NCBI GenBank assembly: GCA_038087875.1
Contig: CM075979.1
Coordinates: 86,242,001-86,306,000, forward strand
DNA: 64,000 nucleotides
From: Malacoraja senta
Taxonomy: Eukaryota
Direction: 5' to 3'
This document shows positions 6,648-48,612 of this stretch, one piece after another. The translations under genes were made by a program, and so were the position numbers. A model generated the notes under the pieces. That model did no database searches, was not told the DNA's origin, and saw only the letters and a list, made by a program, of their open reading frames with translations. How positions within the stretch are numbered: the stretch's first letter is position 1; every line of letters begins with the position of its first letter.

Positions 6648-7233
6648 CAGGGGTCGGCAACCTTGTTCTGCGTAGGGGCCAGGACGCATGCCTGTGAGCA
6701 GATGGCGGGCCACTTCCATCACATGTACACATGGATCCCGCCCCCATCCCGAAAGGCAGGCACCAAAGCACGTGTTCACAGAGATCCCGCCCCTTCAAGG
6801 ACACCACCTGGAGCACTGGCTCCTAGTTATGGGCACTCACGAACACGGCGCACCTATGGACCATTGCCTTGGCTCTGTCCTGAAGGCGGTGGCTCAAATA
6901 CTCATACTCACTCGTCCCCGGCCTATTGACAACCCCGATCCGGACAGTGAAGCCCAGACACAGAAGGTGCGCGGCCGTGCTGGCGGCTTTGCGCAAGATG
7001 CGGTACAGCCAGAGCTCGGCCGTGCTCGGCGGCTCCGCCATTGCGGCCGCCAGTGCAGGCCTCCTTGCATTCTTGCGTCACTGTGCCTGGGCGCTGTGAC
7101 CTCTGGAGGTACCAGAGATGACGGAAGTCTGCAGGCCGGATGATTACGGAGAAAAAATATATATGCCTGCGGGCCAGATGATTTCGGGTTATGGGCCGCA
7201 TTTGGCCCGGGGGCCGTAGGTTGTCGACCCCTG
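6648..7233. mobile_element. Non-autonomous hAT (Charlie-like) element carrying host gene cargo
   Basis: 16-bp TIRs CAGGGGTCGGCAACCT / AGGTTGTCGACCCCTG (1 mismatch). Perfect 8-bp TSD ATTTAATG at 6640-6647 and 7234-7241. GGGCC subterminal repeats. Confidence 0.92.
6912..7041 (-). pseudogene. CYB561D2: Captured first coding exon of a cytochrome b561 domain-containing gene (CYB561D2-like), followed by its splice donor
   Basis: MAEPPSTAELWLYRILRKAASTAAHLLCLGFTVRIGVVNRPGT resembles the remembered CYB561D2 N-terminus ([32 protein letters not shown]). Kozak gcaATGg. Phase-1 donor A|GTGAGT at 6911-6906. Confidence 0.8.
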
Positions 7234-10267: not shown

Positions 10268-11218
10268 GGCGCTGTCGTACAGCAGCGGCTCGCCTGCAGT
10301 CCGTCTGTTTTTACTTTTTTTGTTGTTTTATTTTGTCCTGTTTTAGTTAAATTTTAGTTTATTGGGTTGTGTATGTGTGGGGTGGGGGTGTGAAACATGA
10401 CTTTTGTCTCTTCCTTCGGGGGAATGCGACTTTTTCTTGTCGTATCCCCCTTCTCTGCCTCCGTCTGCGCTGAGGCCAAAATGGCGGAGCTGCCGGCCTC
10501 CAACTCCAACTGCGAGCGACCGACCGACCTCGAGGCTCTGGAGGCAGAGCCAGGACTTACCAGCGCGGGGCTGGCCAACTTCGGGGCTGCGGTGGCGTTC
10601 CGGCGGTGGCGACCGAGGACACTGGTGGTGACCTGAATCCGGAGGCTCGGCCGCAGCTGGCCCAGTGGACGACATCTTCGGGAGCGCGAGGCTGGCCAAC
10701 TTCGGGGCTGCGGTGGCGTTCCGGCGGTGGCGACCGAGGACACTGGTGGCGACCCGAGTCCGGAAGCTCATCCGTGGGCCCAGTGGACGACATCGTCGGG
10801 AGCGCGCAGGTCACAGGTTGGTGACCTGTTTTCTGGGGCTCCCGCAACTACAGCTGCGTCCGCTGGACTGGAGGGCGGCAGCTTCGGCAGCTTCGACCAC
10901 CCCGGGCCGCGGAGTTTGAGCCGGCCCGTCGCGGAGCACGGATTCGGCCGCGGGACTGGCTTACCGTCGCCCGGCAGGGTCACAGCATCAGAAGCCTGGA
11001 TCGCCTCAGCGCAGAGGGAGAACAAAGCGGGAAGAGACAGAGACTTTAAGACTTTTGCCTCCATCACAGTGAGGAGGTGCCTGGTGAACTCACTGTGGTG
11101 GATGTTAATTTGTGTTTATTGTGTGTTTTGTCATTTATTATTATATGTATGACTGCAGGCAACGAAATTTCGTTCAGACCGAAAGGTCTGAATGACAAAT
11201 AAAGGAATCTCTAATCTC
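10268..11218 (+). mobile_element. Non-autonomous GC-rich retroposon (same family as 9196-9996), nested in Helitron B
   Basis: Shared head (gcagcggctc..cctgcagtc), stem-loop CATCACAGTGA..TCACTGTGGTG, tail AACGAAATTTCGTT..TGACAAATAAA. Confidence 0.65.
10562..10806 (+). repeat. Tandem duplication, ~120-bp GC-rich unit (2 copies plus start of a third)
   Basis: AGCGCG unit starts at 10562, 10683 and 10801. Confidence 0.9.
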
Positions 11219-12170
11219 TAAACTCAAGTATCCACTCCTGATTAAATTTCGTCATGTTTATGTACACATTTTAAATAAAATCCTTCCCCCCCCCCCCCAA
11301 AATGTTTTTAAAAAACAGCTCTCACCCATAGAACATTCCATCGTGTGATGTCACAATGCCCAATGCTCACAGATGTCCAATCGGAATGGATCCATTTACA
11401 TATGCCTTTGCAGCAGCCCCAGCCCCTCCCTCCCACCCCCGCAGGCTGTGTCGAAGCGCGTCATCACGTGTGTGGGAATACAGAGAGGATTGGGGGTGAT
11501 AGGGAATGGAGAACAGATGGACTGTCCCTACCCCTCCCACTCTCCCTCCCCACTATTTCCCATCTCTTCCCCCCACTCCTCTCCCTCCACACTCTCCCCT
11601 CTCCCTCCCCTACCCCATCTCCCTCCTCCCTTCCCTCCCCCCCACCTCTCCCCCTCCCCATCCCTCTCTCCTCCCCCTCTCCATCTCCCTCTCCTCCTCC
11701 TCCCACCCCCATCGATCTCTCCCCCACCCCCCTTCCCTCCCCCACCCCCTCCCCTCTCTCCCCCACCCCCTTCCCCCTCCCCACTCCATCCAGTCTTCCC
11801 CCTCTACCCCCTACCCCTATCTCTGCTCTCTCTCTCTTTGATCTTTATCTTTTTCTCTGCCCTCTCTCTCTCTCTCTCTCTCTTCCACTGTCTGTGCACA
11901 CTCTCTCTGCCCCCCCCCTCTAGACGCACCTGAGAGGTGAGGGCTATTCATCAGTGCATAGGGTGGAGATGGGATAAAAGAAACCAATTAATAAAATTAA
12001 GATAATATCAAGGGGTGTGATGAGTGTGTGTGTTTGAGGGTGCCAGATTCCCACCCCGCAACCGTGCTTTGGAGGAACAGACCCAACGGGGGGTGGTTAG
12101 TGTGATGCCGCAGCCCCCCCTCGCAAATGCGCGTTGGGAAACAGACCCAACGGGTCTGCATTTGGTCTAG

Positions 12171-13246
12171 TATATTACTAAAACTCTCATCTTGTTTGTT
12201 TGTAGTATGCGTGCGTGTGCGCGATATTCCAAATCCCCGCCAAGACGGCACACAATAGCCCTATAATTCTTGGCCCACCTTACTCACCATTGTCCTGGGA
12301 AGTAAAATAAATAAGTTTCATTTGGATTGATGGTATGTTTTACAAGTTATTGATATTATAAACTTTACAAACATCACTTTTCAAACCACTTTTCCTCACG
12401 AATCTTATTTACATTAACAAAATTGCGATTTAAAAAAAAAAGCTTTAATCAAATTCTTCCGTTTTCATTCACAATGATGTCACAGTGGGATCCCAAATCT
12501 CATTTATATAAAAAATCCCGATTTTCAAAAAAAATGTTTTAATCAAATTCTTCCGTTTTCATTAACATTGTGTTTAGGTTATTTTAAAGAAAAAACATGA
12601 TTTTCATTGTTTGGGGGGGGGGATAGGAGGGAAGTTACATTTAAAAAAAACATCGTGATTTTCATTGTGGAGGTTGGGATAGGAGGGAGGTGAGGAGTGG
12701 TGGAGCAGGCGGATAGAGGGAGAGGAGGGGGTAGGGAGGGGAGAGGGAGGGGAAAGTGAGGGAGGTGAGGAAGGAGGGGGGATGGAGGGAGTGGAGGGGT
12801 GGAGTGGGGAATGTAGGGTGTGGTGGATAGAGGGAGAGGAGGGCAGTGGGGGAGGTGAGAAGGAGGAGTGGGTTGGGGGGAGTGGGGGAGCAGGGAGATA
12901 GAGGGAGAGATCGGGTGTAGGGAGGGGAGAGGGGTTATGGAGGGAGGGAGGGAGTGACTGTGGGTGGGGGAAAGGAGAGGGAGGGAGAGTTGAGGGAGTG
13001 GGGAAGGGAGGAGGAGAGGGGAAAGAAGAGGGAGGGTGAAGAGGAGGGGAGGGAGTGCTGGGGATGAGGGAATGGAGGACAGGGGTAGGGAAGAGGGATG
13101 GTGAGGCGCTGTTGGTGGAGGGCTGCCGTGACTCGCGTCACAACGGGGATCTCTGGCGTCACAACGGGAATCCGTCAGCCGCGCCTGCGCAGTTGGGGGC
13201 TATGGGTGAATGGTGGAATATTGCGTTAGGGGAACGGGTCTATTAG
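12171..13246 (+). mobile_element. Non-autonomous Helitron C (3' hairpin deleted)
   Basis: 5' TATATTACTAAAACTCTCATCTTGTTTG matches A and D. 3' subterminal CAGCCGCGCCTGCGCAGTTGGGGGCT..GGAAC matches A (10034-10093). Confidence 0.75.
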
Positions 13247-15703: not shown

Positions 15704-15903
15704 NNNNNNNNNNNNNNNNNNNNNNNNNNNNNNNNNNNNNNNNNNNNNNNNNNNNNNNNNNNNNNNNNNNNNNNNNNNNNNNNNNNNNNNNNNNNNNNNN
15801 NNNNNNNNNNNNNNNNNNNNNNNNNNNNNNNNNNNNNNNNNNNNNNNNNNNNNNNNNNNNNNNNNNNNNNNNNNNNNNNNNNNNNNNNNNNNNNNNNNNN
15901 NNN
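15704..15903. other. Assembly gap (200 N)
   Basis: Run of N. Confidence 1.
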
Positions 15904-21692: not shown

Positions 21693-22676
21693 GTAAGCTT
21701 CGATGCTTAAATCGGAGGTCCAATTTGGAATAATGAAGATCCTTCTTTTCCGAGTTACATCAGCACTGACAAGAAAACCTTTCAGTACCAAAGACATTGT
21801 CAATTTTTATTACAGACCTTGGTCTGATTGACAACGCTGCTTGTCACTGAAGCAGTTTGAAAAATAGAAAGTTTGACAATTTTCTACATGTACATTTATT
21901 TAAAAGACTAATTGCTTTACTTTTTCCTTGCTTTCATTTCTGCCTTATCTTGCCCAGATTTGCATTTAAGTAAAGGCCTTCTTTATTTCTTAGTTTGTGA
22001 ACATTGGTAGTTTTGTCCATGGCTGACATATTAATATTAGATGAGTTAAAAAGAGAATTCTAATGAGAATTGCCAAGCTCTCGGCTGAATTGTGAGTCTC
22101 TTGCACCACATTGATTTGTAGTGTTGAGGTTTTTGGACTTGCTACCACCCCCATTACCAAAATTAGTTAGTGTGGGACAAAATAGATACTGAATTGGGGA
22201 CCTTCATAAGTTGATTCTTTGCATTATTATTTTTTGTGGTGTCTAAGATGTTTGGTCTTCAGTAATCATTTCTGATCACTGATTAATTGTTGTACACCGC
22301 TATTATTATCCTAGAGCTTGGGGTGAATGTGTGGATTGTCTGCTTCTTTGTGCCCTGTAAGGTCACACAATTAACAGAGAGAGAATGGGCAGATGAAGTG
22401 TTTTATTTATTTTAGTTGAGGGATAGATACCTAGAACAACTCCAGAGATATGGGCCTTAATCTAAGAATCATGTCTTGGGATCTCTTCAGACAGGCATGA
22501 ATGTAACAACATTTTATTAGGCTTATCTCATGTAATGATCGGTTGAAAAATGCCTTCAATTATATGTGGGGATCACTGAACTTGTTTTCTGTTTAACTTA
22601 TTCACGGGTGCAGGATAGAGAAAATATATACAGCAACAATTGGGGTTAAGAGGAGGGTATTGATCAGCAGCATGGA

Positions 22677-23014
22677 GATTTATTCCTGGTGTACTTAGTA
22701 ACTTGTTATAGGTAAATAGAATCTACTGGAGTTGTTAACCCTATCTTCCTCCTCCACAGATGCTGCCTGACCTACTAAACATTTCATGCATTTTCTATTT
22801 TGAGTGATTTGTTTATAATACAAAATGTAATAAAGCTATTTACTTGAAATGTTAATACCTTGCGTATTATAAACAAATCACTCAAAATAGAAAATGCATG
22901 AAATATTTAGTAGGTCGAGCTGCATCTGTGGAGGAGGATATGGTTAACAACTCAAGTAGATTCTATTTACCTAGAACAAGTTACTAAGTTACTAAACTAC
23001 GCCAGGAATAAATC
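22677..23014. repeat. Long inverted repeat (~145-bp arms, ~42-nt spacer) in WNK1 intron 1
   Basis: 22677-22821 is the near reverse complement of 22864-23014. Confidence 0.92.
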
Positions 23015-24689
23015 CAAGTCACGCAAACACATCATGACAATTTCCAAAACTAGCACAATGAGGTTAAAAGATGTCATAAATTGACCTTATTTTCTCAAAT
23101 ATTATTTTTCACTGCATAAAAGTGATGTTTATGGAGAATGATGGGTGACAATTTAGAGGTGTTAAGATAATTTACATAAAAATGAGTACCACGTTTGAAT
23201 GTTAAGCCATCGGATAAAACCTGCAATATTTTATAGGTGCTATAAATGTATTGAAGCAAAGGATATACTTTGTAATTCTTTAAGTGTAATTATAAGAATC
23301 TATGTAAATATGTGTTAAAATAGGATTCAATACAGTTTAGATAATGCTTCATTAATGACCCCCCCCCCCCCCTCCATTGTAAATTCAGAAGTGGAGATGT
23401 TCATTGTGTAATGTTAAATTCAATTTGCAACTAGTCAGAATTACGTTATTCAAGTCAATGGACTTTAAAAAAACTGCAGATATGTGGTGATAAGTGGCCA
23501 GGGTAGATAATTGGAATGCAGGTGGGTCTGACTGTCATCACCTAAATTGAAAAGTGATTTGTTAAATGTATCGCTGTTCCTTATTATCATTTGGATCCAA
23601 ATCCAAGAGCTTTCTGCTTTGAAAACTGTGATGGTACTCTTAAGTAATGAAAGAATATGGTGCATCAACAGGATCACCACAAAAGTACTTTAAGGCATTT
23701 AATGATGGACTTAGCAATTACGCCCACTTGCATAAAGATTTAAAAAAAACAAGATTCCTTTTTGAATACTCCTTTGAATACTCCTTTTTGAATACTCCTT
23801 CCAGGCTTCTCATAACGTTCATACTTTGATCAAATCCGTCTTTGGTCCACTGATGAAAAAGTCCAGCTAGCAAAAGTCCAGCCTAGCAAAATTTGCAAGC
23901 TTGGTAACATCCTTGTAAATCTCCTCTGCACCCTCTAGTGGTATTGCATTCATCCTGTAATGTGGTGATCAGAATTGTTTATATTTCTCCAGCCATGTCC
24001 TGGTATCTATTCAGCCAATAAAGCCATTATCCTGTGTGCCATAAGCTGTTGATGAAGTTATCTGATTGGTAAGTTAATTAGGACAGTTTAAGAAAGGTAA
24101 CGAGAGAACCCAAGCAAAGGGAGCAAGTGCTCAACAGACGCAAGGGTCTGCAAATATGTAGGTTTGCAAAAATAAAAGTGCAGTGTTGGATAATTCAATG
24201 GGTCAGCAGATTAGGCCATGCAAGTGGAAGGAGAAAATCTAAGTCAAATGGTTCTGTCAGAACTGGTCAGTTCTGATACAACAGAGAAAACGAGTTAGCT
24301 GAAGGTTTTGAATTTGGTGTTGACTCTGGAACACTAAAACACGCTAACAGAAGATGTGGCGTTATCCCTTAACCATTTGTTGGGGTCTGTTCAAAACAAT
24401 GAATAGGCAGAAGTCCGAGAAGGAGTTGGGTGGGGAATTGAAGTGGCAGGCAACAGGAAGCTCAGGATCTTACCTTTGGACTGAACACAAGTGCTCTGCA
24501 AAGTTCTCACCAAGTCTGTGTTTGGTTTCTCCAACATGGAGGAGATCACAAGCCTTTTGCTGATTTGGAAGTGCAAATTAATCTGCTTCATCTGGAAAGA
24601 CTGTTTAAGGTTCCTGGATAGTGAGGTGTAAAAGGACACGTTTAGAGATACAGCATGGAAACATGCACTTCGGCTCACCAAGTCCATGC

Positions 24690-24925
24690 CAACCATCGAT
24701 TACCCGTTCACACTAGTTCTGTGTGTCTAACTTTTACATCCACTCCTTATACACTAGTGGTAACTTTAGAGGCCCACGTGCCTTTGGGATGTGGGAGGAA
24801 ACCAGAACACCTGGAGGAAACCCATGTGATCTCAGTGGGAACAACGGAACATGCAAATTCCACACAGACGACAGGTGAGATCAGGATCGAAAGCTGGTCT
24901 CTGTCGCAGTGAGGCAGCATCTCTG
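24690..24925 (-). mobile_element. tRNA-derived V-SINE (HE1-like), degenerate
   Basis: Reverse complement of the SINE at 45058-45300. Confidence 0.7.
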
Positions 24926-25384
24926 CCAGCTAAAGATGTGTTACGTGCTCTATGGATACATAGAAAAGTGCAATGAGAAGTGGAGTTGGAAGAATAGAAC
25001 AAGAAATTCCAGAGGAAATTGTTCCTTTCGAAAGACGTCTGGTGGTGGAATCTCATTGGTGATGGGCATTGTGAGGCATAACCATTGAATGCAGAGTAGT
25101 GGGATGGAAAGTGGAGATCTGAGAAACTATCCTTGTATTGGTAATTCGAACAATCTTGGCATTGACATATAAAAGAGCTAAGTCACCACACTAACGCAAT
25201 CTGTGATCTATCCTGGAAGAGGAGTGGGTGCATACTGAGATGTGGTCAAGGGCTATTCAGTTATGGCAGTTTGAAGCCCCAGTTCAGGAAGAAGGAAAAC
25301 ATCTGAGGCATATATGGGTTGTCTCCAATGAGTCTCCAAAGGAGTAGATTGTTTCCTTGTAGGAGGCAAGTTTAGAAGATGTAT

Positions 25385-25830
25385 TGTGTAGGAAGGAACT
25401 GCAGATGCTGGTTTAAACCAAAGATAAACACAAAAAGCTGGAGTAACTCTGCGGGACAGGCAGCATGCCTGGAGAGAAGGAATGGGTGACATTTTGGGTG
25501 GAGACCCCTCTTCTGACTGGTTTGGGATAAGGGGAAACAAGAGTTATGGACGATGGTGTAGAGAGATAATGAACAATGAATGAAAGATATGCAAAAAAGA
25601 AACGATGATAAAGGAAACAGGCCATTGTTAGTTAGCCTTTTTGTTGGATGAAAACAAGAAGCTAGTGCGACTTGGGTGGGGGAGGGATGGAGAGAGAGGG
25701 AATGCCGGGGTTAGTTGAAGTGAGAGAAATCAATATTCGTACCACTGGGCTGTAAGCTGCCCAAATGAAATATGAGATGCTGTTCCTCCAATTTGCGTTT
25801 AGCCTTACTCTGATAATGGAGGAGACCTAT
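25385..25830 (-). mobile_element. Penelope-like element 3' fragment
   Basis: Encodes RKLEEQHLIFHLGSLQPSG on the minus strand. Terminal sequence homologous to 59630-59940. Confidence 0.8.
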
Positions 25831-26467
25831 TGTTGAGATGACTGAGAATCCTTGGGCTAGCAATGGAGATTTGTTGCTAATTTATCCCCTTGGGGGGGCG
25901 GGGGGGGGTCCAGAAAATGAGTGAAGGAATAGATTGTGTGAAGGTGAGGGCAGGTTGGAAAATGACAGAAAAAGTAAAGAAAAGTACCTCTTCATTTGGG
26001 TAAATGTTTTAAAATTTAATAGACTCTTTTTGTTGCTAATATTTTTCATGCACTCTTTTTCCTTCCTATTCTGCTTTCTCAGTTTAATCAGGGTTTTCTT
26101 TTTACCTATTCCATCTTGTATGCTCCTGACCATCCATTGGTGTGTTGGAGAGATTGAGATTTGTGTTGAGAAATCTGCCATATTTCTCACTGGGGACATA
26201 TATACTCTGACTCCAACTCCTCTTTGAATATCTTTGACCAATGTGATGGTGTTTACTTTGGCTCTTTCTGTCCACTTTTGCTAAGTGATATCTTTATACT
26301 TGATCTGCAATTTAAATTTTATTTCTGGTCTATCCTTTTCGTAATGCTAAACCTAACCAAATTGAAAACACTATTGCTACTGCTGCTCTGACCTGCCCGC
26401 GTTGAAAATACATTACAGTATGATTTTGATAAGTTGAAGGATTGATTAAAAAAAGACAGGTTCATGC

Positions 26468-26600
26468 AGTCAAGTCAAGTCAAGAGAGTTTATTGTCATG
26501 TGTCCCAGATAGGACAATGAAATTCTTGCTTGCTGCAGCACAACAGAGTATTGTAAGCATAAATACAGAACAGTTCAGCGTGTCTATATAGCATAGACCA
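26468..26600 (-). mobile_element. Rex1 3' tail fragment followed by (TA)n
   Basis: Reverse complement of the tail at 460-540. Confidence 0.7.
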
Positions 26601-26613
26601 TATATATACATGG

Positions 26614-26649
<36 letters not shown>

Positions 26650-27145
26650 CTATTATGTTATGCCCCTTTCATCTATTTGGTTGTTAATTTAATATTGGTT
26701 GAGATCAGGAAAACGTAATCGGCTACTTTGCTAAATTTTGGGCTATTAAATAAAGACTGTTGGCTGAGTAACACAAGATTGTGGATAGAAACGCATTCAT
26801 GGTTGCATGTGCTAAATGTCTGATGAAGTTGAGTGTGGCTGGTGAGTGGGGCTAATTAAGCAAACTGCTTTGTCATGGATGGTATTAAGTTGCTTTCAGT
26901 GTGGTTGAAACTGCATTTATCCAGGTACGTGGGGGAATTCCATCGCTTTCCCGATTTGTTCCTTCAATGTGATGATGGAAAGGAGTTGGGTTGTTGCTAC
27001 TGGACACATAGCATCTGGCTTGCTTGAATAATCCATAGTTAAGTAGCTGGTCCTGTTGAATTTCTGGTCAACGGCTAGTGCCATAATATAGACAGTTGGG
27101 ATTTATGTGATGGTAATGCTATTTAATGTGAAGGGTAGTTGGTAC

Positions 27146-27787
27146 AATAGATAATTGACAATAGGTGCAGGAGTAGGCCATTTGGCACTTCGAGCCAGCA
27201 CCGCCATTCAATGTGATCATGGCTAATCATCCCCAATCAGTATCCCGTTCCTGCCTTCTCCCCATATTCCCTGACTCCGCTATCTTTAAGAGCCCTATCT
27301 AGCTCTCTCTTGAAAGTATCCAGAGAACCGGCCTCCACCGCCGTCTGAGGCAGAGAATTCCACAGACTCGCAACTCTGTGAGAAAAAGTGTTTCCTCGTC
27401 TCCTTTCTAAATGGCTTACCCCTTATTCTTAAACTGTGGTCCCTGGTTCTGGACTCCCCCAACATCGGGAACATGTTTCCTGCCTCTAGGGTGTCCAAAC
27501 CCTGAACAATCTTATATGTTTCAATAAGATCCCCTCTCATCCTTCTAAACTTCAGAGTGCACAAGCCCAGCGGCTCCATTCTCTCAGCATATGACAGTCC
27601 CGCCATCCCGGGAATTAACCTTGTAAACCTACGCTGCACTCCCTCAATAGCAAGAATGTCCTTCCTCAAATTAGGGGACCAAAACTGCACACAATACTCC
27701 AGGTGTGGTTTCACTAGGGCCCTGTACAACTGCAGAAGGACCTCTTTGCTCCTATACTCGACGACTCTTGTTATAACGGCCAACATG
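27146..27787 (-). mobile_element. 5'-truncated CR1 LINE
   Basis: EYRSKEVLLQLYRALVKPHLEYCVQFWSP..RRMRGDLIETYKI, followed by the CR1 3' tail. Confidence 0.92.
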
Positions 27788-28434
27788 CGACTCTTCTGTT
27801 GAAGGTGATCATTGCCTAGCACTTATCTGCTTAACTCTGAGAAGTTATAAATAGAATGACAGTTTTGGCGTCATCATTGAGTGTCCCCGTGTTTGACCTG
27901 CCAATGGAAGGTTGATGCTAAAGCACTACCCTGAAGAACTACCGTGCTGACTTCAGACTAGGATGTGTGGCCTCTAACTGCCATAATCTGTTGTCTTTTG
28001 TGAAATGAATGACTCCAGGTGTAAGTGTTCTCTTGAGGGCAACTGAGTTCAGTTTTACCAGACTCATGGTACTACAATCAGTCAACTATTGCTCTTCTCC
28101 CCCACCAATTGTAAAGTGTTGACCTTCAAGCTCTGATCCTGCCACCCAAATCCATAGATTTCTAATGATTATCTTTGTTGCTTTCCTGTGGCATTAGTTA
28201 TTTGTACATCTATTTCTCTATGACCTCTAAGAATCCATGTTTTAATTTAAGAGCTGCCATTCACCATAAATCACAACCTGTTTTTGAAGTTTCAGAATCT
28301 TATACAGTACCTATGTATAATATTTAATTTCTGAATTATATTGAAATTGTTTTGCTGTGGTGTTCCAAAGTAATTAATTTATATTCTGCTCATTTAAGCA
28401 TCAGTGTACAGGACTGTCCTGATCTTGAAAGGAG

Positions 28435-29410
28435 GTATCGCATAGCTGGTAGAGCTGCTACCTCCGTGCCAGAGACCCGGGTTTGATCCTGACCTTGGGT
28501 GCTGTCTCTGTGGAATTTACATGTTCTTCCTGTGACCCTGTGAATTTCCTCCGGGTGCTCCGGTGTCCTCCTAGATCCCAAAGACATGCAGATTTATAAG
28601 TTAACTAGACCAAGCGCAGACCCGTTGGGTCTCGTTCCCCCAATGCAATATTCCACCAAACTGCGCATGCGCGGCTGACGGACCCGCACTGCGCAGGCAC
28701 GACTGCCGCGTTCAAAGTTGTGCCGTTGACGGCAGAAATTAAGTTAGAGTTAATAAAGTGAATAGAGGACCCGTGGAGGCGTTTGTAAAATAGAACAAAA
28801 CGTACCCAAGATGAGGCCAGCCAAGTACACGTGGAAAAAAAAAATGGCGATCTGAAAATCGGCAAAGGCCCCAACTGCGCACGAGCGGATACCGGGCCCA
28901 CTGCACACGCGCGGGGAGACGCCGTCATTTTGCGTCACTGCCCTGTCACTGGCGCCATTTTCAATTGTGATGCGGCTGACTGGCCTCCCTCAACAGCGCA
29001 GGCGCGGCCGGCAAGTGGGGGCGCTGTATAAAGTTAATTTAAGTTTTAAGTCTCAATAACTTGTAAAATATAACATCAATCTGAATGAAACTTGGCTAAT
29101 GCACATCGCAGGACAATGGTGAGTAAGGTTGGCCTAAAATTGTAGTGCTATCGTGTACTGTTTTTGCGGAGTTTCGGGAACAAATATATATACAAACAAA
29201 CAAGATGAGTTTTGGTAATAAAATAATAATTATTATAATTATATATATAATAGATAGATTGGCTTCTGTAAATTAGGAACTGCAGGATAGGAACGATTTA
29301 GAGGAATATGGGCTAAATGCGGGTAGTTGGAACAAATGTAGGTGGGGCATCTTGGTCGGCATGGATAAGTTCGGCCGAAGGGCCGGTTTCTGTGCTGCAT
29401 GGCTCTAACT
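28435..29410 (+). mobile_element. V-SINE (HE1-like) split by Helitron D
   Basis: A/B-box head at 28440-28490. SINE sequence ..aagttaa|ttggct.. is interrupted at 28604/29259. Confidence 0.75.
28605..29258 (-). mobile_element. Non-autonomous Helitron D (654 bp, intact termini)
   Basis: Minus strand reads A|TCTATCTA...AGACCC-AAC-GGGTCT hairpin...CTAG|T. Inserted between A and T with no TSD. Confidence 0.92.
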
Positions 29411-30759
29411 CATTGCTGTCCTCATCTTCTTAAAGAGAGTAATGTAATGTGATCAGGCTGTTTCATTTTTTGAGGGAGTTAGATGTGATGGTGTCTTTTT
29501 TTACCAAGTGTCATCAAGAATGGCTTTCATGCAAAAAGATTGGTTTGTGTTTTGTGTTGTATCATTCTAAAGGTATCGGTAGATGGCGCTCTGATCACAG
29601 GTTTTATTTTTCACTTTGCATTAGCAGGGCACCTAATGGTGTGCTTGATTTAGATTTTCCAATGTGCTTTTACAACTGAAAGAGTGAGCTTGTCTATCAT
29701 CATTGTAGGTTCAAGATTTGCAAAAAACGGATTGAGAATAATAATTGTGCTCAGCAGTTATGATATTCATTTTTGAAAGGTCATTGTAAATAACTGTCAC
29801 ATTGCTAAGAGAATTACGTGATTTTCTTGTGAATTTGGTTGGTGTATTTGATTTTCTTTTTTTAAAACAGCTCAATATAGAGCCTGTCAATATATGATTG
29901 AAATATTAAGTTAGTAGATGAGGCTGTGTACCTTAATTTCAGCTCATCCAAAGAGAAGAAAATCTTTTGCAGGCATGAAGTTTCTACTCTAAATATATAA
30001 ATTGCACTTTGAAATAAACTAGATCTGCTGAAACACTTGGAAAAATCCACAAAGCTCTACTATAAGTTCTACTATAATGTGATGGTTGTGTTCTTAAGAA
30101 ACCTCGCATTGATGAAAATTACATCATAAAACCAATCGTGTCAATGGGGGAAAGGGGGTTAGGGGCGAGAGAGTTTCAGACTGTCAATAGAAGTTTGCTT
30201 ATTACAGGATGTTCAAAAATAAATATCTTTTGATTGCTATAAATTTTATTTTTGTTGGAAGTTAAAACTATAAAAAGCGAAGTAGCATTGTTGACTAGAG
30301 CATTATTGAACGTGTCAAAAGAAGCAATTGGTTGTCAAATCCAGTGGCCACGTGGTGATACTGACAGACTGTTCTTAAGCAATAGTGTCTGATTAATGTG
30401 GGGAGATTACATGTAAGCAGCTTTTTTTCCTATCCAGGCAGATGTCATTGAAATTAGAAAAGTTAAACCACAACTAAGCTGATCTGAGGTTGAAGCCTCA
30501 CTTTTTGAACCTCACTCTTTTAGTTTCACTGTGGGCACTGTGCACAAAGCTCTCAGAAAAAAGTAACGCAGAAAAAGTAGTTTTAGTGATGTTGATTGCA
30601 GTATAGGTGTTTTGGAGGAAATAAACAATACTTGTTCTTTGAAATAGCTCCATGGGATTTATTCTCCCCTTGAGAACAGGAGTCTCTTTGCATTCTTAAT
30701 GTCCAGGTGTTTGTGCAACAAACATTAGAGCTGCAGTAGAAAGGGCAGTTGGATAGCAT

Positions 30760-32422
30760 CAGTGCCCTCCATAATGTTTGGGACAAAGTCCCATCATTTA
30801 TTTATTTGCCTCTGTACTCCATAATTTGACATTTGTAATAGGAAAAAAAATCACATGTGGTTAAAGTTCACATTGTCAGATTTTATTAAAGGGTATTTTT
30901 ATACATTTTGGTTTCGCCATGTAGAAATTACAACTATGTTTATACATAGTCCCCCCATTTCAGGGCACCATAATGTTTGGGACACATGGCTTCACGGTGT
31001 TTGTAATTGTTCAGGTGTGGTTAAATGCATAATTTTGGTTAATAATATAAGAGAGCTCTCAGCAACCCATCTTTCCTCCAGTCTTTCCATCACCTTTGGA
31101 AACTTTTATTGCTGTTTATCAACATGAGAACCAAAGTTGTGTCAATGAAAGTCAAAGAAGCTATTATGAGACTGAGAAACAAGAATAAAACGGTTAGAGA
31201 CATCAGCCAAACCTTAGGCTTACCAAAATCAACTGTTTGGAACATCATTAAGAAGAAAGAGAGCACTGGTGAGCTTACTAATCGCAAAGTCTATTGTCTA
31301 TTGAAAGGGACTGGCAGGCCAAGGAAGACCTGCACAGCTGATGACAGAAGAATTCTCTCTATTATAAAGAAAAAATCCCAAACACCGGTCTGACAGATCA
31401 GAAGCACACTTCAGGAGTCAGGTGTGGATTTGTCAATGACCACAGAAGGATTCATGAACAGAAATACAGAGGCTACACTGCAAGATGCAAACCACTGGTT
31501 AGCCGGAAAAAATAGGATGGCCAGGTTACAGTTTGCCAAGATGTACTTAAAAGAGCAACCACAGTTCTGGAAAAAGATCTTGTGGACAGATGAGATGAAG
31601 ATTAACATATCAGAGTGATGGCAAGAACAAAGTATGGAGGAGAGACGGAACTGCCCAAGATCCAAAGCATACCACCTTATCTGTGAAACATGGTGGTGGG
31701 GCTGTTATGGCCTGGGCATGTATGGCTGCTGAAGGTACTGGCTCACTTATCTTCATTGATGAAACAACTGCTGGTGGTAGTGGCATAATGAATTCTGAAG
31801 TGTATAGACACATCCTATCTGCTCAAGTTCAAATAAATGCCTCAAAACACATTGGCTCGTGGTTCTTTCTACAGCTAGACAATGATCCCAAACATACTGC
31901 TAAAGCAACAAGGTAATTTTTCAAAACTAAAAAATAATAAATTTTTGAGTGGCCAAGTCAATCACCCGATCTGAACCCAATTGGGCATGCCTTTTATATG
32001 CTGAAGAGAAATCTGAAGGGGACTGGCCCCCAAAACAAGCATAAGCCAAAGATGGTTATAATACAGGCCTGGCAGAGCATCACCAGAGAAGACACCCAGC
32101 AACTGGTGATGTCCATGAATCGCAGACTTCAAGCAGTCATTGCATGCAAATGATATGCAACAAAATACTAAACATGACTACTTTCGTTTACATGACATTG
32201 TTGTGTCCCAAACATTATGGTGCCCTGAAATGGGGGGGACTGTATATAAACACTGCTGTAATTTCTACATGGTGAAACGAAAATGTATAAAAACGGCTTT
32301 TATTAAAATCTGACAATGTGCACTTTAACCACATGTGATTTTTTTTCTATTACAAATCTCAAATTGTGGAGTGCAGAGGCAAATAAATAAATGATGGGTC
32401 TGTCCCAAACATTATGGCACTG
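30760..32422 (+). mobile_element. Tc1 (Passport-like, IR/DR-type) transposon, full length, transposase disrupted
   Basis: ~220-bp TIRs starting CAGTGCCCTCCATAATGTTTGGGACA with internal direct repeat. ILWTDE, KHGGG, DNDPKH, WPSQSPDLNPI motifs. TA after the right end. Confidence 0.92.
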
Positions 32423-36325: not shown

Positions 36326-37678
36326 CCTCCTCCTTCTTAACCAATATCAAATTGATAATTTTCAAGAGGCAGTTGTGAATGGTGAGATAAGTGACAGATA
36401 GTCCAATAATGCTTGTGTCAGGGGTGCAGCAGCAGCTAGCAAGTGATGGACAGATCCAGGTGAGGAGTGGGTGGGCAGAAGTTTGTATAAATACTATGAT
36501 CAGTGTCCAGAACCTTTGTTTCAAGTTGTGGCCTGGTATGAACTTTTCTGATAGAAAAATACATTTTTGCTCCTTGTGATTCCAGTGTGAATAACGCTGC
36601 TTGTGATATTCAATGCAAGTAGTTTGCAGGGGCCACGGAGCTTTTTTACAAGTGGGGGGAGGGTGTGGGAGGGGGTGATCCCCTCCCATGGTAGGGACTT
36701 TATTAAATTTGATGTATTAAAATCATGTTTTAGTGCATTGTAGAAGTATGATTTCAATGTTTTTTGTTTGAAGTAATTTTAAGATAATGTAGGGCCTGCA
36801 TGGGAGATATGAGTAGGTGATTATTATTTTTGTTATTGCTTGACCTCCAAAAACTGGGGGATAATAATACAGGCCATCCCCCACCTCAAAAGTGGGGGGA
36901 TATATCCCCCTCCCCCCCACTCCGTCCGGATCGACGCCAGTGCCTTCCACGGTACAGAAACATTGACAAAACAATTTTTTTATGTGTTATAAAGTGTTTT
37001 TTTGTTTTTTAGTTGGAAAAAGGGACAAGAAATAATCATAACATTTCCTGATTTTGCAGTCATACAAATTATGTTTTGCTCGGGGGAAAAATCGGAGTAT
37101 TTTGAAAGTATGCGTTCTCCTTTTGACGTACATTTCATTTGATATGAATTTAGAATCATCAAACCATGACAATAAAGGGGGTATATGTTTGTGGAAACAT
37201 TACTTTTTTATTTTGTTAAATAAACGTTAATTTTCGAGAAATCTAAAATGCATTAGAAATATACATTTCAATGCACTGAGTCTCTTGCCCAGAGTAGGTG
37301 AATTGAGGACCAGAGGAAAGATTTAAGATGAAGGGGAAAAGATTTCATAGGAATCTGAAGGGTAACTTTTTCCACACAAAGCGTGGTGGGTGTATGGAAC
37401 AAGCTGCCAGATGAGGTAGTTGAGGCAGGGACTATCCCAATGCTTGACTGTTAGACTGATGCATGGATAGGACAGGTTTGGATGGATATGGACCAAAAGC
37501 AGGTAGTGTAGCTGGGACATGTTGGCGGGTGTGGGCAAGTTGGGCCGAAGGGCCCGTTTTCACACTGTATCACTCTGTGACTACATTATACCTCCACCAT
37601 GCATGAATGCATGAATGCTTCAAAATCAAGTGGTCAAGTTTTATTGGGCAAGAGTGACCATAATATGGTTGAGTTCTT

Positions 37679-37856
37679 ATATTTAAGAGGGAGTTAGATG
37701 TGGCCCTTGTGGCTAAAGGGATCAGGGGGTATGGAGAGAAGGCAGGTACGGGATACTGAGTTGGATGATCAGCCATGATCATATTGAATGGCGGTGCAGG
37801 CTCGAAGGGCCGAATGGCCTACTCCTGCACCTATTTTCTATGTTTCTATGTTTCTA
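37679..37856 (+). mobile_element. Short CR1 3' end fused head-to-tail to the long CR1
   Basis: Near-identical to 40502-40679. Confidence 0.9.
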
Positions 37857-40680
37857 TTAGGATGGAGAGTGACATTGTTAATTCAGAAACAATGGTTCTG
37901 AACTTAAGGAAAGGTAACTTTGAGGGTATGAGACGTGAATTGGCCAAGATTGACTGGCAATTAATTCTAAAAGGGTTGACGGTGGATATGCAATGGAAGA
38001 CATTTAAAGACTGCATGGATGAACTACAAAAATTGTTCATCCCAGTTTGGCAAAAGAATAAATCAGGGAAGGTAGTGCATCCGTGGATAACAAGGGAAAT
38101 CAGGGATAGTGTCAAAGAGAAGGATGATGCGTACAAATTAGCCAGAAAAAGCAGCATACCGGAGGACTGGGAGAAATTCAGAGACCAGCAGAGGAGGACA
38201 AAGGGCTTAATTAGGAAAGGAAAAATAGATTATGAAAGAAAACTGGCAGGGAACATAAAAACTGACTGCAAAAGTTTTTATAGATATGTGAAAAGAAAGA
38301 GCTTAGTTAAAACAAATGTAGGTCCCTTGCAGTCAGAAACAGGTGAGTTGATCATGGGGAACAAGGATATGGCGGACCAATTGAATAACTACTTTGGTTC
38401 CGTCTTCACTAAGGAAGACATAAATAATCTGCCGGAAATAGCAGGGGACCGCGGGTTAAAGGAGTTGGAGGAATTGAGTGAAATCCAGGTTAGTCGGGAA
38501 GTGGTGTTGGGTAAATTGAATGGATTATTATTATTATTTTTTTAATTTGTATTTTATTAGAAGTGCATTACATTACAACCACATACATTAGTACTTGTCA
38601 TTTATATCTTCTTACAATTAATGTACTCCATTTATTTTTTACACTAGAAAAGGAAAAGATTGAAAGAAAGAAGAAAGTGAAGGAAAAAGTGGAAGTGTAG
38701 GAAATGTGACAACAAAAAAGGACAAAGACCCTATAAGAGCAAAATTAAAAACAAAAGAAAAAGAGTTAAGAAATAGACCCTAGGAAAAAAAGAAAGAGAG
38801 AAAGAGGAAAAAGAGAGAAACAAATATTTTTATGAGCATTATGCAAAATGGACATTCCAACTCTTCAACTATCATCCCCCCCTTACCTGACCTCAATTTT
38901 TATTTTTTTAATTTTTTATTTTTAAAGTACTTTTGCACCTTATGTTTGTAATAATTCTATAAATGCAGACCACGTCAAGTGGAAGTGATCTGGTTTACCT
39001 GCTAGGAGGAGTCTTATCTCTTCTAGGTATAATGTTTCAAACATATTTGAAATCCACATATTTATAGTTGGAAATTGAATGGATTAAAGGCCGATAAATC
39101 CCCAGGGCCAGATAGGCTGCATCCCAGAGTACTTAAGGAAGTAGCTCCAGAAATAGTGGATGCATTAGTAATAATCTTTCAAAACTCTTTAGATTCTGGA
39201 GTAGTTCCTGAGGATTGGCAGGTAGCAAACGTAACCCCACTTTTTAAGGAGGGAGAGAGAAAACGGGGAATTACAGACCAGTTAGTCTAACATTGGTACT
39301 GGGGAAACTGCTAGAGTCAGTTATTAAAGATGGGATAGCAGCACATTTGGAAAGCGGTGAAATCATTGGACAAAGTCAGCATGGATTTACAAAAGGTAAA
39401 TCATGTCTGACGAATCTTATAGAATTTTTCGAGGATGTAACTAGCAGCGTGGATAGGGGAGAACCAGTGGATGTGGTGTATCTGGACTTCCAGAAGGCTT
39501 TCGACAAGGTCCCACATAAGAGATTAGTATACAAACTTAAAGCACATGGCATTGGGGGTTCAGTATTGATGTGGATAGAGAACTGGCTGGCAAACAGGAA
39601 GCAAAGAGTAGGAGTAAACGGGTCCTTTTCACAATGGCAGGCAGTGACTAGTGGGGTACTGCAAGGCTCAGTGCTGGGACCCCAGCTATTTACAATATAT
39701 ATTAATGACCTGGATGAGGGAATTGAAGGCAATATCTCCAAGTTTGCGGATGACACTAAGCTGGGGGGCAGTGTTAGCTGTGAGGAGGATGCTAGGAGAC
39801 TGCAAGGTGACTTGGATAGGCTGGGTGAGTGGGAAAATGTTTGGCAGATGCAGTATAATGTGGATAAATGGGAGGTTATCCATTTTGGTGGCCAAAACAG
39901 GAAAGCAGACTATTATCTAAATGGTGGCCGACTAGGAAAAGGGGAGATGCAGCGAGACCTGGGTGTCATGGTACACCAGTCATTGAAAGTAGGCATGCAG
40001 GTGCAGCAGGCAGTGAAGAAAGCGAATGGTATGTTAGCTTTCATAGCAAAAGGATTTGAGTATAGGAGCAGGGAGGTTTTACTGCAGTTGTACGGGGTCT
40101 TGGTGAGACCACACCTGGAGTATTGCGTACAGTTTTGGTCTCCAAATCTGAGGAAGGACATTATTGCCATAGAGGGAGTGCAGAGAAGGTTCACCAGACT
40201 GATTCCTGGGATGTCAGGACTGTCTTATGAAGAAAGACTGGATAGACTTGGTTTATACTCTCTAGAATTTAGGAGATTGAGAGGTGATCTTATAGAAACT
40301 TACAAAATTCTTAAGGGGTTGGACAGGCTAGATGCAGGAAGATTGCTCCCGATGTTGGGGAAGTCCAGGACAAGGGGTCACAGCTTAAGGATAAGGGGGA
40401 AATCCTTTAAAACCGAGATGAGAAGAACTTTTTTCACACAGAGAGTGGTGAATCTCTGGAACTCTCTGCCACAGAGGGTAGTTGAGGCCAGTTCATTGGC
40501 TATATTTAAGAGGGAGTTAGATGTGGCCCTTGTGGCTAAGGGGATCAGAGGGTATGGAGAGAAGGCAGGTACGGGATACTGAGTTGGATGATCAGCCATG
40601 ATCATATTGAATGGCGGTGCAGGCTCGAAGGGCCGAGTGGCCTACTCCTGCACCTAATTTCTATGTTTCTATGTTTCTAT
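37857..40680 (+). mobile_element. Young 5'-truncated CR1 LINE (ORF2 tether plus RT), interrupted by an L1 fragment and one frameshift
   Basis: ORFs 37775-38545, 39075-39290 and 39293-40582 (429 aa: YLDFQKAFDKV, QGSVLGP, FADD). (CTATGTTT)n tail. Confidence 0.96.
38528..39071 (-). mobile_element. L1-clade LINE 3' fragment nested in CR1
   Basis: 15-bp TSD AAATTGAATGGATTA at 38513-38527 and 39072-39086. Minus strand PTIKMWISNMFETLYLEEIR..TWSAFIELL resembles fish L1 ORF2 C-terminus. A/TAA tail. Confidence 0.8.
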
Positions 40681-40695
40681 TGCCATATACTCAAG

Positions 40696-41027
40696 CATAG
40701 AAAATAGGTGCAGGAATTTCCCATTCGGCCCTTCGAGCCAGCACTGCCATTCAATATGATCATGGCTGTTTGTCTAAAATCAGTACCCCTTTCCTGTTTT
40801 TTCCCCATATTCCTTGATTTTGATAGCCCCAAGAGCTAAATGTAACTCTCTCTTGAAAACATCCAGTGAATTGGCCACTGCCTTCTGTGGCAGAGAATTC
40901 CACAGATTCACAATTCTCTGGGTGAAGAAATGTTGTCCTCATCTCTGTCCTAAATGGTCTACCCCTTATTCTTAAACTGTGACCCCTGGTTCTGGACTCC
41001 TCCAACATCGGGAACATTTTTCCTGCA
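40696..41027 (-). mobile_element. CR1 3' fragment, tail-to-tail with the long CR1
   Basis: AGKMFPMLEESRTRGHSLRIRGRPFRTEMR. Confidence 0.88.
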
Positions 41028-41132
41028 GTTACAGTAAGTGAAAATCTAGCAGGCAAGCAGGATGCTTTCTCCAACCACCCCCATTTGAAGGCCACTATCT
41101 TCCACCGCTTCTACCCAGTGCTTGCTACCTAC

Positions 41133-41363
41133 TTCCAGCAGCCACTGGTTGTCCTCCAGGATGCACCGAGCCGCAGCCTGGTCCATGCCGATCACCGGAG
41201 CGAATTCTGCGCGGAGACTCTGACGGCAGCGACGCAACGCTTCCGACGTCCCGGGACTCTTGCACTGAGGCTGCTCTATGGCCGGAACTGCAGCGAGCGA
41301 CTCGCTAGCCCGGCAAACACTCGCCAGCCCCGGCTCCCCGTCCGCCGTTGCTTCTGCTTCTAT
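41133..41363 (-). pseudogene. TDP2: Captured TDP2 (TTRAP) exon 1, UBA-like N-terminal segment, with splice donor; start codon apparently ATG>ATA
   Basis: RQSLRAEFAPVIGMDQAAARCILEDNQWLLE resembles remembered human TDP2 RRLLCVEFASVASCDAAVAQCFLAENDWEME. Phase-0 donor GAA|GTAGGT at 41132-41127. Frame open from ATA at 41363 (IEAEATADGEPG..). CpG-rich. Confidence 0.78.
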
Positions 41364-41959
41364 CCCTCCCTCCGCCCCGGCTCTCCAACACCCATGACCA
41401 GGTTACTCGGAGCACAGCGGCGCTTCGTCCAAAGCCGGAAACGTTGAAACGTGTCTAGCCAAAAAAGTGGGGGGGGCTGCAGCCCTCCCCCAGTTCCGCG
41501 GCCCACGGTTTGTTAGCTAATATAATTTCCTTTTGAGGTATTTCAATGTGTTTGTCTTTTAGGATATTATCGGGCATATTTATGTTTATCGGAGAGGGTG
41601 GGTTGTGTATTTGGTACAAAGGAGAGGGCCTTGATGTTATCTGCAGGTTTTTTTTATTTGACAAATCTGTGCCCTTGCTCTTCGGGCACAATGAGGACTT
41701 GGTGTATGTGAAACAGCTGTAAAGGGCAATATGCTTTCTGGCGATTACAAAGCATGCTTTTCAAATTTATTTAAGAAATAATATGCAAAAATTTGATATT
41801 TGCCAAGAATCAACATTAAACAAATAAATACTGTCTGAAGAAGTTTGTTTAGTTTATTGTCACGTGTACCAAGGTATAGTGAAAAACTTTTGTTGCATGC
41901 TAACCAGTTAGCAGATAGACAATACATGATTACAATCGATCCATTTACAGTGTATAGGT

Positions 41960-43029: not shown

Positions 43030-43202
43030 GACCGAAAATTGTCAAAATCAGAAAGGCAGAGGTTTAAAGAAGAAGCTGAAATGTTGAAGGGCTTGCAACA
43101 TCCGAATATAGTCAGATTTTATGATTCTTGGGAATCAACATTAAAAGGAAAGAAATGTATAGTGCTGGTGACTGAACTAATGACGTCCGGTACTCTGAAA
43201 AC
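43030..43202 (+). CDS. WNK1: WNK1 coding exon 2 (173 nt)
   Basis: aacag|GAC CGA: [58 protein letters not shown]. Donor AC|GTAAGT. Confidence 0.97.
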
Positions 43203-47168: not shown

Positions 47169-47389
47169 ATACTTGAAAAGGTTTAAGGTGATGAAAATCA
47201 AGGTGCTTCGAAGTTGGTGCCGTCAGATTTTGAAAGGGCTCCATTTTCTACATACCCGCACCCCACCCATCATCCACAGGGATTTGAAGTGTGACAACAT
47301 CTTCATTACAGGCCCTACCGGATCAGTTAAAGTTGGCGATCTTGGCCTTGCTACGTTAAAAAGGGCATCATTTGCAAAAAGTGTAATAG
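47169..47389 (+). CDS. WNK1: WNK1 coding exon 3 (221 nt; catalytic loop and DLG)
   Basis: ttgcag|A TAC: [73 protein letters not shown]. Donor G|GTAAGT. Phases agree with exons 2 and 4. Confidence 0.97.
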
Positions 47390-48444
47390 GTAAGTTGCTT
47401 GTTATCAAGTGAAGGTTATTTTTTATTAGTGGTGGTTTTGGAATATAATAGCAGAAGCAAAATGGTTTTACTGAAGTGACTGATAGAGGTGACTGCATTG
47501 ATGAAAATTCAGGAAATAAAACTGTTTTGTTACTGTTTGATTAAAAAAAACAAAAACCTGAAGGTAGCTGCAAATTGGAACTAGCACACGGTATTGTATT
47601 CTGTGGCATTTTATTTTGTCTGGTTGCTCTGATGAGCCATCTTTACTCAATTTTCTGTATTCCAAGTATTTTCAACTGTAGGACGTCTAATTTCCCCAGC
47701 TGCAGTAGACGTAAAAGTACTGCAGTTGAACGGTAAGTGCTATAGAAAAAGATGTGGTGAGTTGCCTTTCTAACGATTTGGAGATCAAGATTATTGAATG
47801 CCTACATTTTGTGTTCATGCAATAGTTTTCATTTGCAAGGCAATTTTGTATCTGGTTGGAGTGTACTAAACATAGTTGGTCAGATTTGCTATAGATTATC
47901 TTGATTAACTGTGTTTTCCTTGAAATATACTGATGGATTTCATTTCAATTGATGGAAACTGAATAATCTACAAAGGAAACTTAAACTCTGCCCAAAGAAA
48001 AAGTTTAACTCATTGTTTTTGTTACACTGCAATTTAAGTTGGGTATCAACAACATTTAAAACAATTTTATTACATGAAATAACGTGCACTTGCACTTCAG
48101 GTTGGCTGTTTCTCCATTTTAAGATGAGGCAGATAAAAGAGGTAATTATTCTGCACATGATATCATTCAAGTTGCAAGGAAATTTAAACTTTGAGACATT
48201 TACTTTCTGGTTTAGCGACTGCAGAATATTAATTCATCCCAACTTGGTTCAGTCCTCCATGCTGGCTACCTTGCAGTTAAAACCTTTGTGATGGTGTGTT
48301 GCTGAGTAACTGAGAAGGGCTCTCCTTCGCCTCCACTTTGTCTTTCCCCACAGGTTATCGTCAACATCATCGTCTTCCATCGGTGAGTACCGACAGCCTC
48401 TACTCACTGAGTCTGTTAGAGTCTGAAACATTCTTTTAATTTAA

Positions 48445-48612
<168 letters not shown>

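Follow-up and report, generated by a model that had tools for sequence, protein, structure and literature searches.

Intron 1 of a WNK1-type kinase gene of the skate Malacoraja senta contains, in antisense orientation, the start of a second gene, TDP2, as part of a repeated unit. The sequence at issue lies in a window of 64,000 nucleotides (GenBank assembly GCA_038087875.1, contig CM075979.1, positions 86,242,001 to 86,306,000 of the forward strand; coordinates below are counted from the window's first letter). The reading preferred here, to which a probability of roughly 0.58 is assigned, is that the minus-strand block 40697-41393 is one copy, now decayed, of a mobile cassette within a Pack-type DNA transposon, of the kind termed A type below, with the transposon occupying 36627-41507 and a nest of long interspersed nuclear elements (LINEs) having been added to it later. 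Such a cassette would have come from the skate's own TDP2. Behind a leader of ~114 bases it would include the first coding exon with the GT donor, then 105 bases of intron 1 and, already resident in that intron, a short LINE 3′ end. It would then have moved inside non-autonomous terminal-repeat (Pack-type) DNA transposons of at least two backbones, and have spread to thousands of copies in M. senta and its relatives. The window copy, with its right end at 41507, its left end most likely at 36627 and a GTTTG duplication, would have entered WNK1 intron 1 in antisense orientation before the divergence of at least two skate species, have received its 3.4-kb LINE nest afterwards and now be a dead passenger.

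TDP2 exon 1 in a multi-copy cassette

The cassette and its setting, with the other copies L001 and L003 introduced below, are as follows.

41280-41393, minus strand: leader common to all copies; an upstream in-frame ATG elsewhere is ATA here, at 41363-41361
41133-41279, minus strand: TDP2 first coding exon, 49 codons, UBA helices 1-2, start codon mutated to ATA
41028-41132, minus strand: predicted start of TDP2 intron 1, with donor GTAGGT at 41132-41127 (family majority GTAAGT)
40697-41027, minus strand: 5′-truncated LINE 3′ end of 330 bases within the mobile cassette, its junction with the intron common to L001 and L003
exon 1 ending at ~21692 (...EVAWCELQ), exon 2 at ~43040-43200, exon 3 at ~47180-47391 and exon 4 starting at 48445, plus strand: WNK1-type kinase exons

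The minus-strand frame from 41279 to 41133 is open and translates to IEQPQCKSPGTSEALRRCRQSLRAEFAPVIGMDQAAARCILEDNQWLLE, with GTAGGT at 41132-41127 directly after it. Taken alone, matches to the exon peptide give modest support for TDP2: in a search of solved structures the top match was the human TDP2 UBA domain (E=0.0074), and Pfam returned UBA_4 below its cut-off (E=0.019). Stronger evidence comes from an RNA run of a related skate (X18), where a contig shares the last 30 letters of the exon, halts exactly at 41133 and adds 255 letters which, read on the minus strand, begin AGA GCC CTC AAC ACC TAT TTT GAA GCA GCT, that is RALNTYFEAA, with which the TDP2 UBA domain continues. The contig holds only those 30 exon letters, its tie to the exon-body variant ...KFGLVTGMDQAAARCILEDNQWLLE being that this is the sole such variant in the run, one with 15 listed differences from the window copy over 121 positions (16 by the tool's count). 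When that exon variant and the ten exon-2 residues are joined, the human TDP2 UBA domain is matched at E=4.7e-9, with alignment through ...WEME and on across the junction into RALNSYFE; C. elegans TDP2 follows at E=0.008, and p47 (0.047), DCN1 and others rank lower. By the spliced continuation and the joined-peptide matches, at the level of sequence, the segment 41133-41279 is TDP2 exon 1 and 41133 its true end. With the 49-residue exon as query, phmmer matched only another copy of the repeat (P0001) among 1.8 billion representatives, and no full-length TDP2.

The start codon position, 41279-41277, reads ATA. The family majority has ATG there (plus-strand T>C at 41277, with word depth 415,313 of 417,515). 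An earlier note made from the letters of this stretch had proposed the TDP2 identity, an exact stop at the GTAGGT donor after the WEME that ends exon 1, a probable change of ATG to ATA at the start and an antisense position in WNK1 intron 1. The identity stands, on the UBA structure match and the X18 continuation, and so does the boundary, as the X18 contig joins 41133 to RALNTYFEAA; the family depth bears out the loss of the start, and the layout of the WNK1 exons places 36627-41507 inside intron 1, with the TDP2-like frame antisense to WNK1. A separate observation concerns the expressed TDP2-type variant, which in RNA contigs of X15 and X18 reads ...GCC ATG GAG CAG CCT CGG GGT at 41253 and upstream. 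Its ATG, when the 30-letter overhang upstream of 41253 is joined as printed, is one base out of the UBA frame, which reflects either a clipping artefact or a real start codon elsewhere.

What did not hold is the notion of a one-off capture parked at this site: the window copy is an old member of a family with thousands of copies. DNA sequencing run X1 is from the same species (over the unique flank 41456-41869 one of its contigs shows 100% identity, at word depth 23), and its summed word depth is 700,000-850,000 over 41032-41163, 450,000-780,000 over 41252-41339, 22,000-32,000 over 41340-41405 and 11,000-13,000 over 41428-41471, the A-type segment and adjacent sequence (41340-41471) spanning ~3,000-32,000. 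For 41028-41340 the range is 38,000-850,000 against 21-24 at the unique flank in the same run, or ~1,600-37,000 times single copy, these sums of word depth not being copy counts, since overlapping short unitigs inflate them a few-fold. From public runs compared with 41010-41640, 3,097 contigs were placed on the 631 bases. A family of thousands to about ten thousand copies is suggested. At least eight other organisms' runs contain about a third of the words, and in a second species (X3) the depth profile is the same.

Three further copies were retrieved via a database open reading frame (ORF), P0001, which reads through the donor: L001 (4.6 kb), L002 (1.2 kb) and L003 (0.7 kb). They and the window copy are all differently flanked, and all align from 41393 downstream through leader, exon, donor and 105 intron bases, L001 and L003 continuing into the LINE tail, which every copy reaching that far includes. 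The window tail at 40697-41027 is 86-88% identical to those of L001 and L003; with the window's other LINE tails its identity is 76-81%. Since its junction with the intron (41028/41027) recurs in L001 and L003, the tail is, by this comparison, a component of the cassette and no later insertion. The earlier note had taken the CR1/L1 sequence in general for later expansion, and for this tail the shared junction overturns that, the proposal remaining probable for the nest at 37285-40680. In X15, a unitig with the intron piece and LINE junction (41010-41155, depth 12.9) shares an end with the expressed-type exon unitig (depth 10.4), which hints that the parental TDP2 intron already holds the tail, graph adjacency being no proof of it.

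The intron piece 41028-41132 is CpG-poor and the best-conserved part of the family (word depth 700,000-850,000); this, together with a stop codon within the exon of L003, points to neutral decay of the sequences. Protein searches gave only three proteins for the sense ORF and none for the left-arm or antisense ORF; exact-pattern scans of Joint Genome Institute (JGI) metagenome contigs gave no copies. The entries P0001, P0003 and P0004 in public protein sets are ORFs of 70-112 residues that run from the upstream ATG through the TDP2 exon and donor into the intron; one is tagged UBA_4, and all are transposon copies and not genes. As to age, contigs of another skate (organism C) span 41379-41871 and 37138-37303, which dates both the insertion and the LINE nest, the latter for its left edge at least, to before the split of those species.

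Backbones, termini and the route of mobilization

The features around the cassette are these.

36622-36626, no strand: proposed left target-site duplication GTTTG, identical to 41508-41512
36627-36957, plus strand: left arm, with terminus CAGGGGCCACGGAGC, G-run hairpin motif at 36648, a core at ~36690-36790 and a right-end-like block at 36888-36952
36958-37284, no strand: low-copy internal sequence, either element interior or host DNA (depth ~1,500-3,200 at 37057-37170, ~32 at 37228-37231)
37285-40680, plus strand: nest of LINEs and short interspersed nuclear elements (SINEs), with a 5′-truncated LINE, reverse-transcriptase frame 39293-40582, a 180-base tail at 37679-37856 and an AT-rich insert at 38521-39077
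40681-40696, no strand: 16-base spacer between tail-to-tail LINE tails
41394-41460, minus strand: A-type-specific segment, present in L003 and an X15 contig, absent from L001 and L002, containing CCGGAAAC
41461-41507, plus strand: A-type right terminus, a G-run hairpin then ...GTTCCGCGGCCCACG, depth single copy just outside
41508-41512, no strand: proposed right target-site duplication GTTTG, identical to 36622-36626

The TDP2 cassette occurs in at least two backbones, the A type of the window, L003 and the X15 contig, and a B type represented by L001 and L002. The B-type arm comprises 145-155 bases upstream of 41393-41396 and begins exactly where the flanks of L001 and L002 cease to match each other. 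Its start is CAG(A/G)GCTGCCAAC, with repeated CTCACGC/GCGTGAG subterminal motifs and hairpins, and as CAGGGCTGCCAAC... it is a good fit to a hAT end of the CAG.G type. Among X1 contigs crossing 41393 there is 98% agreement on this arm, and a search of the window for the B-type end found none; the window copy is of the rarer A type. The opposite end of the B type was not recovered. That 41507 is a real family terminus agrees with the terminus at 41461-41507 proposed in the earlier note: X1 depth falls from 2,255 over 41472-41493 to 88 over 41494-41515 and 0-24 beyond, and a copy from another species shares the ending ...GTTCCGCGGCCCA, the last 13 bases at 41507 being identical between species. 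A Helitron carrier was rejected, as TC...CTRR ends after hairpins are absent.

For the other end of the window element, 36627 is slightly favored as the partner of 41507 on sequence comparison. Compared over 15 positions, the two ends agree at 11; of the remaining four, three are transitions, two of which fall at CpG sites. GTTTG stands outside both ends, as the earlier note had reported, at 36622-36626 and 41508-41512. When the 20 kb to the left were shuffled 3000 times under a Markov model, 31% of the shuffles gave an 11/15 match, 0.8% such a match with a duplication of at least three bases, and none (0/3000) one with a five-base duplication. The motif AAAAGTGGGGGG, with which a hairpin of a G-run and a C-run begins, occurs in the 64 kb only at 36648, 36888 and 41463. 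Depth in the left region (~1,000-3,200) is like that of the right terminus, both end regions amounting to ~50-300 copy equivalents. Without the LINE nest 37285-40680, an element from 36627 to 41507 would be ~1.5 kb. Within the left arm, depth is ~1,000-1,300 at 36670-36677 and ~100,000 at 36700-36780, with contigs stopping at 36957-36960. The AT-rich core 36690-36790, at a depth of ~100,000 (~4,000-5,000 times single copy and ~100 times the adjacent arm ends), is in its own right part of a much larger repeat family.

Several observations weigh against one or another part of the reading of 36627-41507 as a single Pack-type element, in addition to the caution given above on summed depth. The target-site duplication of hAT elements is normally eight bases and one of five bases is not the norm. 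Here the flanks share only five (left GTAGTTTG, right GTTTGTTA), with the left end reading CAGGGGCC and the right end, read inward, CGTGGGCC for comparison with the hAT CAG.G type; the duplication is thus unusual for hAT, it is observed in the window copy only, and the inverted repeat is just 11/15. The hAT-like label given to these ends in the earlier note is therefore at most tentative, and the clearly hAT-like arm is that of the B type. No autonomous element or transposase was identified, the interior yielding nothing but a LINE reverse transcriptase in Pfam; a transposase acting on the arms is the presumed mobilizer. Similarity of the arms beyond their ends is weak (local-alignment p 0.002-0.05) and driven by G runs. 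No copy with both ends and lacking the LINE nest was found, the left and right ends never occurred on one contig, and the organism C contig match ends at 36568 and not at 36626. Depth at 37228-37231 is single-copy-like, as would be expected if the left element were a separate one with host DNA next to it.

The same cassette could then still reside in a DNA-transposon backbone, with the two termini coming from different insertions. This is distinctly less probable than a single element, though it deserves the second place: 36627-~37200 would be a separate small non-autonomous element, and the TDP2 unit only ~40697-41507, either one-ended, truncated by the LINE nest or having lost its left end. 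The right-end-like block 36888-36952 within 36627-36957, contigs stopping at 36957-36960, the single-copy depth at 37228-37231, the G-run-driven arm similarity and the lack of other copies in the left-arm ORF search all fit it. It is opposed by the flank after 36952/36957 (TACAG...), which lacks the GTTTG that follows 41507, by the absence in 3000 shuffles of any combination of such an inverted repeat with a five-base duplication, and by the similar depth of both end regions at ~50-300 copies. The partnership of 36627 with 41507 put forward in the earlier note keeps its support from the ends and their GTTTG, and is lacking a two-ended copy.

The Pack-type reading of the family as a whole draws on defined termini, two recurrent arms, differing flanks, a target duplication, the absence of an RNA polymerase III (Pol III) head and the absence of a 5′-truncation gradient in cassette depth. 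Searches for tRNA and with Rfam found no tRNA, 7SL or 5S head, and a SINE with a Pol III head was rejected accordingly. One feature tells against two independent DNA-level captures: both subfamilies share the 5′ cassette boundary at 41393-41396, and a transcript start, implying an RNA step, would be simpler. With both backbones joining at one point and the cassette ending in a LINE tail, a retrotransposed 5′ piece of TDP2 pre-mRNA that landed in transposons is a real alternative to capture at the DNA level.

Taken further, the cassette might be a retroposon throughout, a 5′ piece of TDP2 pre-mRNA with a LINE 3′ tail copied in SINE-like fashion by LINE reverse transcriptase, the arms being transposons hit by chance. 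Its attractions are the LINE tail present in every copy reaching that far, as in L001 and L003 and as a SINE-like unit should have, the joining of both arm types at 41393-41396, as a fixed transcription start would produce, a copy number on the SINE scale, and the ending of the window cassette exactly at the 3′ end of the tail, after which unrelated DNA follows. Contigs over 41393 nevertheless agree at 98% on the B-type arm (a test that naked copies could escape), and in two copies the homology boundary coincides exactly with the classic hAT-type end that opens this arm. The two 5′ arms are recurrent and not random flanks, no duplication flanks 41393 and 40697, and neither a 5′-truncation gradient nor a Pol III head is present. 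Wholesale retroposition is accordingly rated improbable, well below a DNA-transposon carrier with termini from different insertions.

In the preferred Pack-type reading, the LINE nest at 37285-40680 probably arrived after the element. It contains RVT_1 (Pfam, E=2.3e-24), has a word depth in the millions and has joints that skip 37678-37856. A target duplication of the nest was sought, and the 16-base spacer has no second copy.

The promoter question and the state of the window copy

The block 41030-41455 comprises 426 bases with GC 0.61 and CpG observed/expected 0.90 (whole window 0.42), values that in sequence composition exceed the thresholds for a CpG island (>200 bases, GC >0.5, CpG observed/expected >0.6) and confirm its earlier description as CpG island-like. 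In other copies the upstream in-frame ATG of the leader opens MEAEA..., and two short stretches present there, of 12 bases near 41340 and 9 bases near 41250, are missing from the window copy. The A-type-specific segment 41394-41460 could be either more TDP2 upstream sequence or carrier DNA.

An ETS-like motif (CCGGAAAC) is present at 41435-41442, where the earlier note had placed one, together with the proposal that promoter, exon 1 and intron start were captured as one piece. Other copies of the window-type subfamily have G at 41440 (11,670 of 11,789), so that the GGAA core is, on this comparison, a private mutation of the window copy and the site no evidence for a captured promoter. The part common to both subfamilies begins only 114 bases upstream of the ATG. 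Exon 1, donor and probable intron start can be kept as parts of the cassette, and the promoter is left without these two supports.

The window copy looks, from its sequence features and RNA reads, like a dead passenger, given that its start codon is lost, that no further TDP2 exons accompany it and that it lacks transcription of its own. TDP2 exon 2 is nowhere in the 64-kb window, polyA RNA reads are without strand bias (55 versus 39), and 2 of the 94 are near-identical to the window copy. The contrary idea, that WNK1 harbors a working nested gene or that TDP2 uses the site as an alternative promoter and first exon, could appeal to the CpG observed/expected of 0.9, the intact GT donor and the open frame. 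It is close to refuted by the lost start codon, by the lack of exon 2 in 64 kb, by membership of the sequence among thousands, by the 15 of 121 positions at which the expressed TDP2 exon variant differs, and by RNA reads that show no strand bias and almost never match the window copy. A nested real gene was rejected specifically on the absence of exon 2 from the window. Pre-mRNA of WNK1 would include RNA antisense to TDP2 only in a trivial sense, the window copy being ordinary among thousands, and regulation of TDP2 by that route would be pure conjecture.

Related systems and further features of the window

In plants, DNA transposons are well known to capture fragments of genes. SINEs with LINE-derived 3′ tails, such as elasmobranch HE1, attain very high copy number, and they resemble the TDP2 cassette in both respects; the cassette differs in having at its head an RNA polymerase II gene start, with no tRNA, 5S or 7SL head, and in the terminal-repeat arms attached to it.

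Closest to hand is an element of the same genome, a hAT miniature element carrying part of CYB561D2 at 6648-7233 of the window, with ends CAGGGGTCGGCAACC ... GGTTGTCGACCCCTG and an 8-base duplication, ATTTAATG. Here too a leader, first coding exon, donor and intron start are carried in a small multicopy transposon, whose end the B-type arm resembles. Its hAT ends and 8-base duplication are of textbook form, whereas the TDP2 element has other ends and a 5-base duplication. As a side observation, L001 contains at 515-654, beside a LINE tail, a truncated copy of the CYB561D2 element, with 25 captured-gene bases (96% versus 6997-7021) and a right arm at 80%.

In 100 animal genomes 370 Pack-TIRs were found, only 4 of them multicopy, with hAT the commonest animal carrier (Tan et al. 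2021, PMC8277862); an example is the Xenopus hAT-N8_XT/CAPSL Pack-TIR on three chromosomes (PMC8277862). The skate element shares with Pack-TIRs or Pack-MITEs, and with Pack-MULEs, the state of a non-autonomous element, with probable terminal repeats, that has a host gene fragment and no transposase, the piece being in this case the 5′ part with an exon. It departs from Pack-TIRs in its thousands of copies, two backbones and included LINE tail. HelibatN3, a Helitron of vesper bats, took up the promoter of NUBPL along with six codons and a splice donor (Grabundzija et al. 2016, PMC4778049), and the Helitron-captured promoters, in 4,690 copies, drive chimeric transcripts (PMC4778049). The likeness is in a gene start plus donor amplified to thousands in a vertebrate, with the potential of a mobile first exon or exon trap. 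The difference is in the carrier, which in the skate lacks TC...CTRR and has inverted-repeat-like termini, a 5-base duplication and, in the sister subfamily, a hAT-type end; further, promoter activity and chimeric transcripts are properties of the bat family, the skate family being known from sequence.

In animals such capture has been described as a rare event that nearly always leaves a single copy (PMC8277862). Set beside the bat Helitrons (PMC4778049), the one vertebrate example of a captured gene start amplified into the thousands, the skate TDP2 family represents a HelibatN3-like outcome with a different, terminal-repeat carrier, rare for a vertebrate element of the cut-and-paste type. 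If true, this second independent case and its CYB561D2 sister family would suggest that for a time loaded transposons spread in skates with unusual efficiency. It would also offer a natural system for studying how such cassettes are acquired, through DNA or through RNA, and whether portable first exons with donors, in their thousands, alter host transcripts. Annotation is affected as well, copies being already called UBA_4-like proteins in public sets (P0001, P0003). A quite speculative extension, to which little probability is given, is that the transposon spread thousands of CpG-island-like gene starts (leader, ATG, 49-85 codons and GTAAGT donor) that might act as a mobile first-exon or exon-trap module, yielding TDP2-UBA-host chimeras or new 5′ ends; intronic copies, lying in both orientations, might also yield abundant TDP2-complementary RNA, and service of the cassette as an unmethylated island might lie behind the family's success.

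Other features of the window concern its LINEs. The 3′ tails at 37678-37858 and 40501-40681, in the same orientation, are 97.8% identical, as compared with 75-82% for other window tails. The first of them is nested in the LINE body, and many contigs skip from 37678 to 37856. The pair suggests either that both were inserted recently from a single active master or that gene conversion took place. The AT-rich low-complexity insert at 38521-39077 breaks the LINE reverse-transcriptase region and has a duplicated TTGAATGGATTA on both sides. At 40657-40720 the tail-to-tail LINE ends form an 85-base inverted repeat (40584-40668 and 40693-40777), a hairpin with a weak microRNA-like Rfam match to mir-4773 (E=0.043, far below the gathering score). 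At 15704-15903 there are 200 N, an assembly gap or masked stretch.

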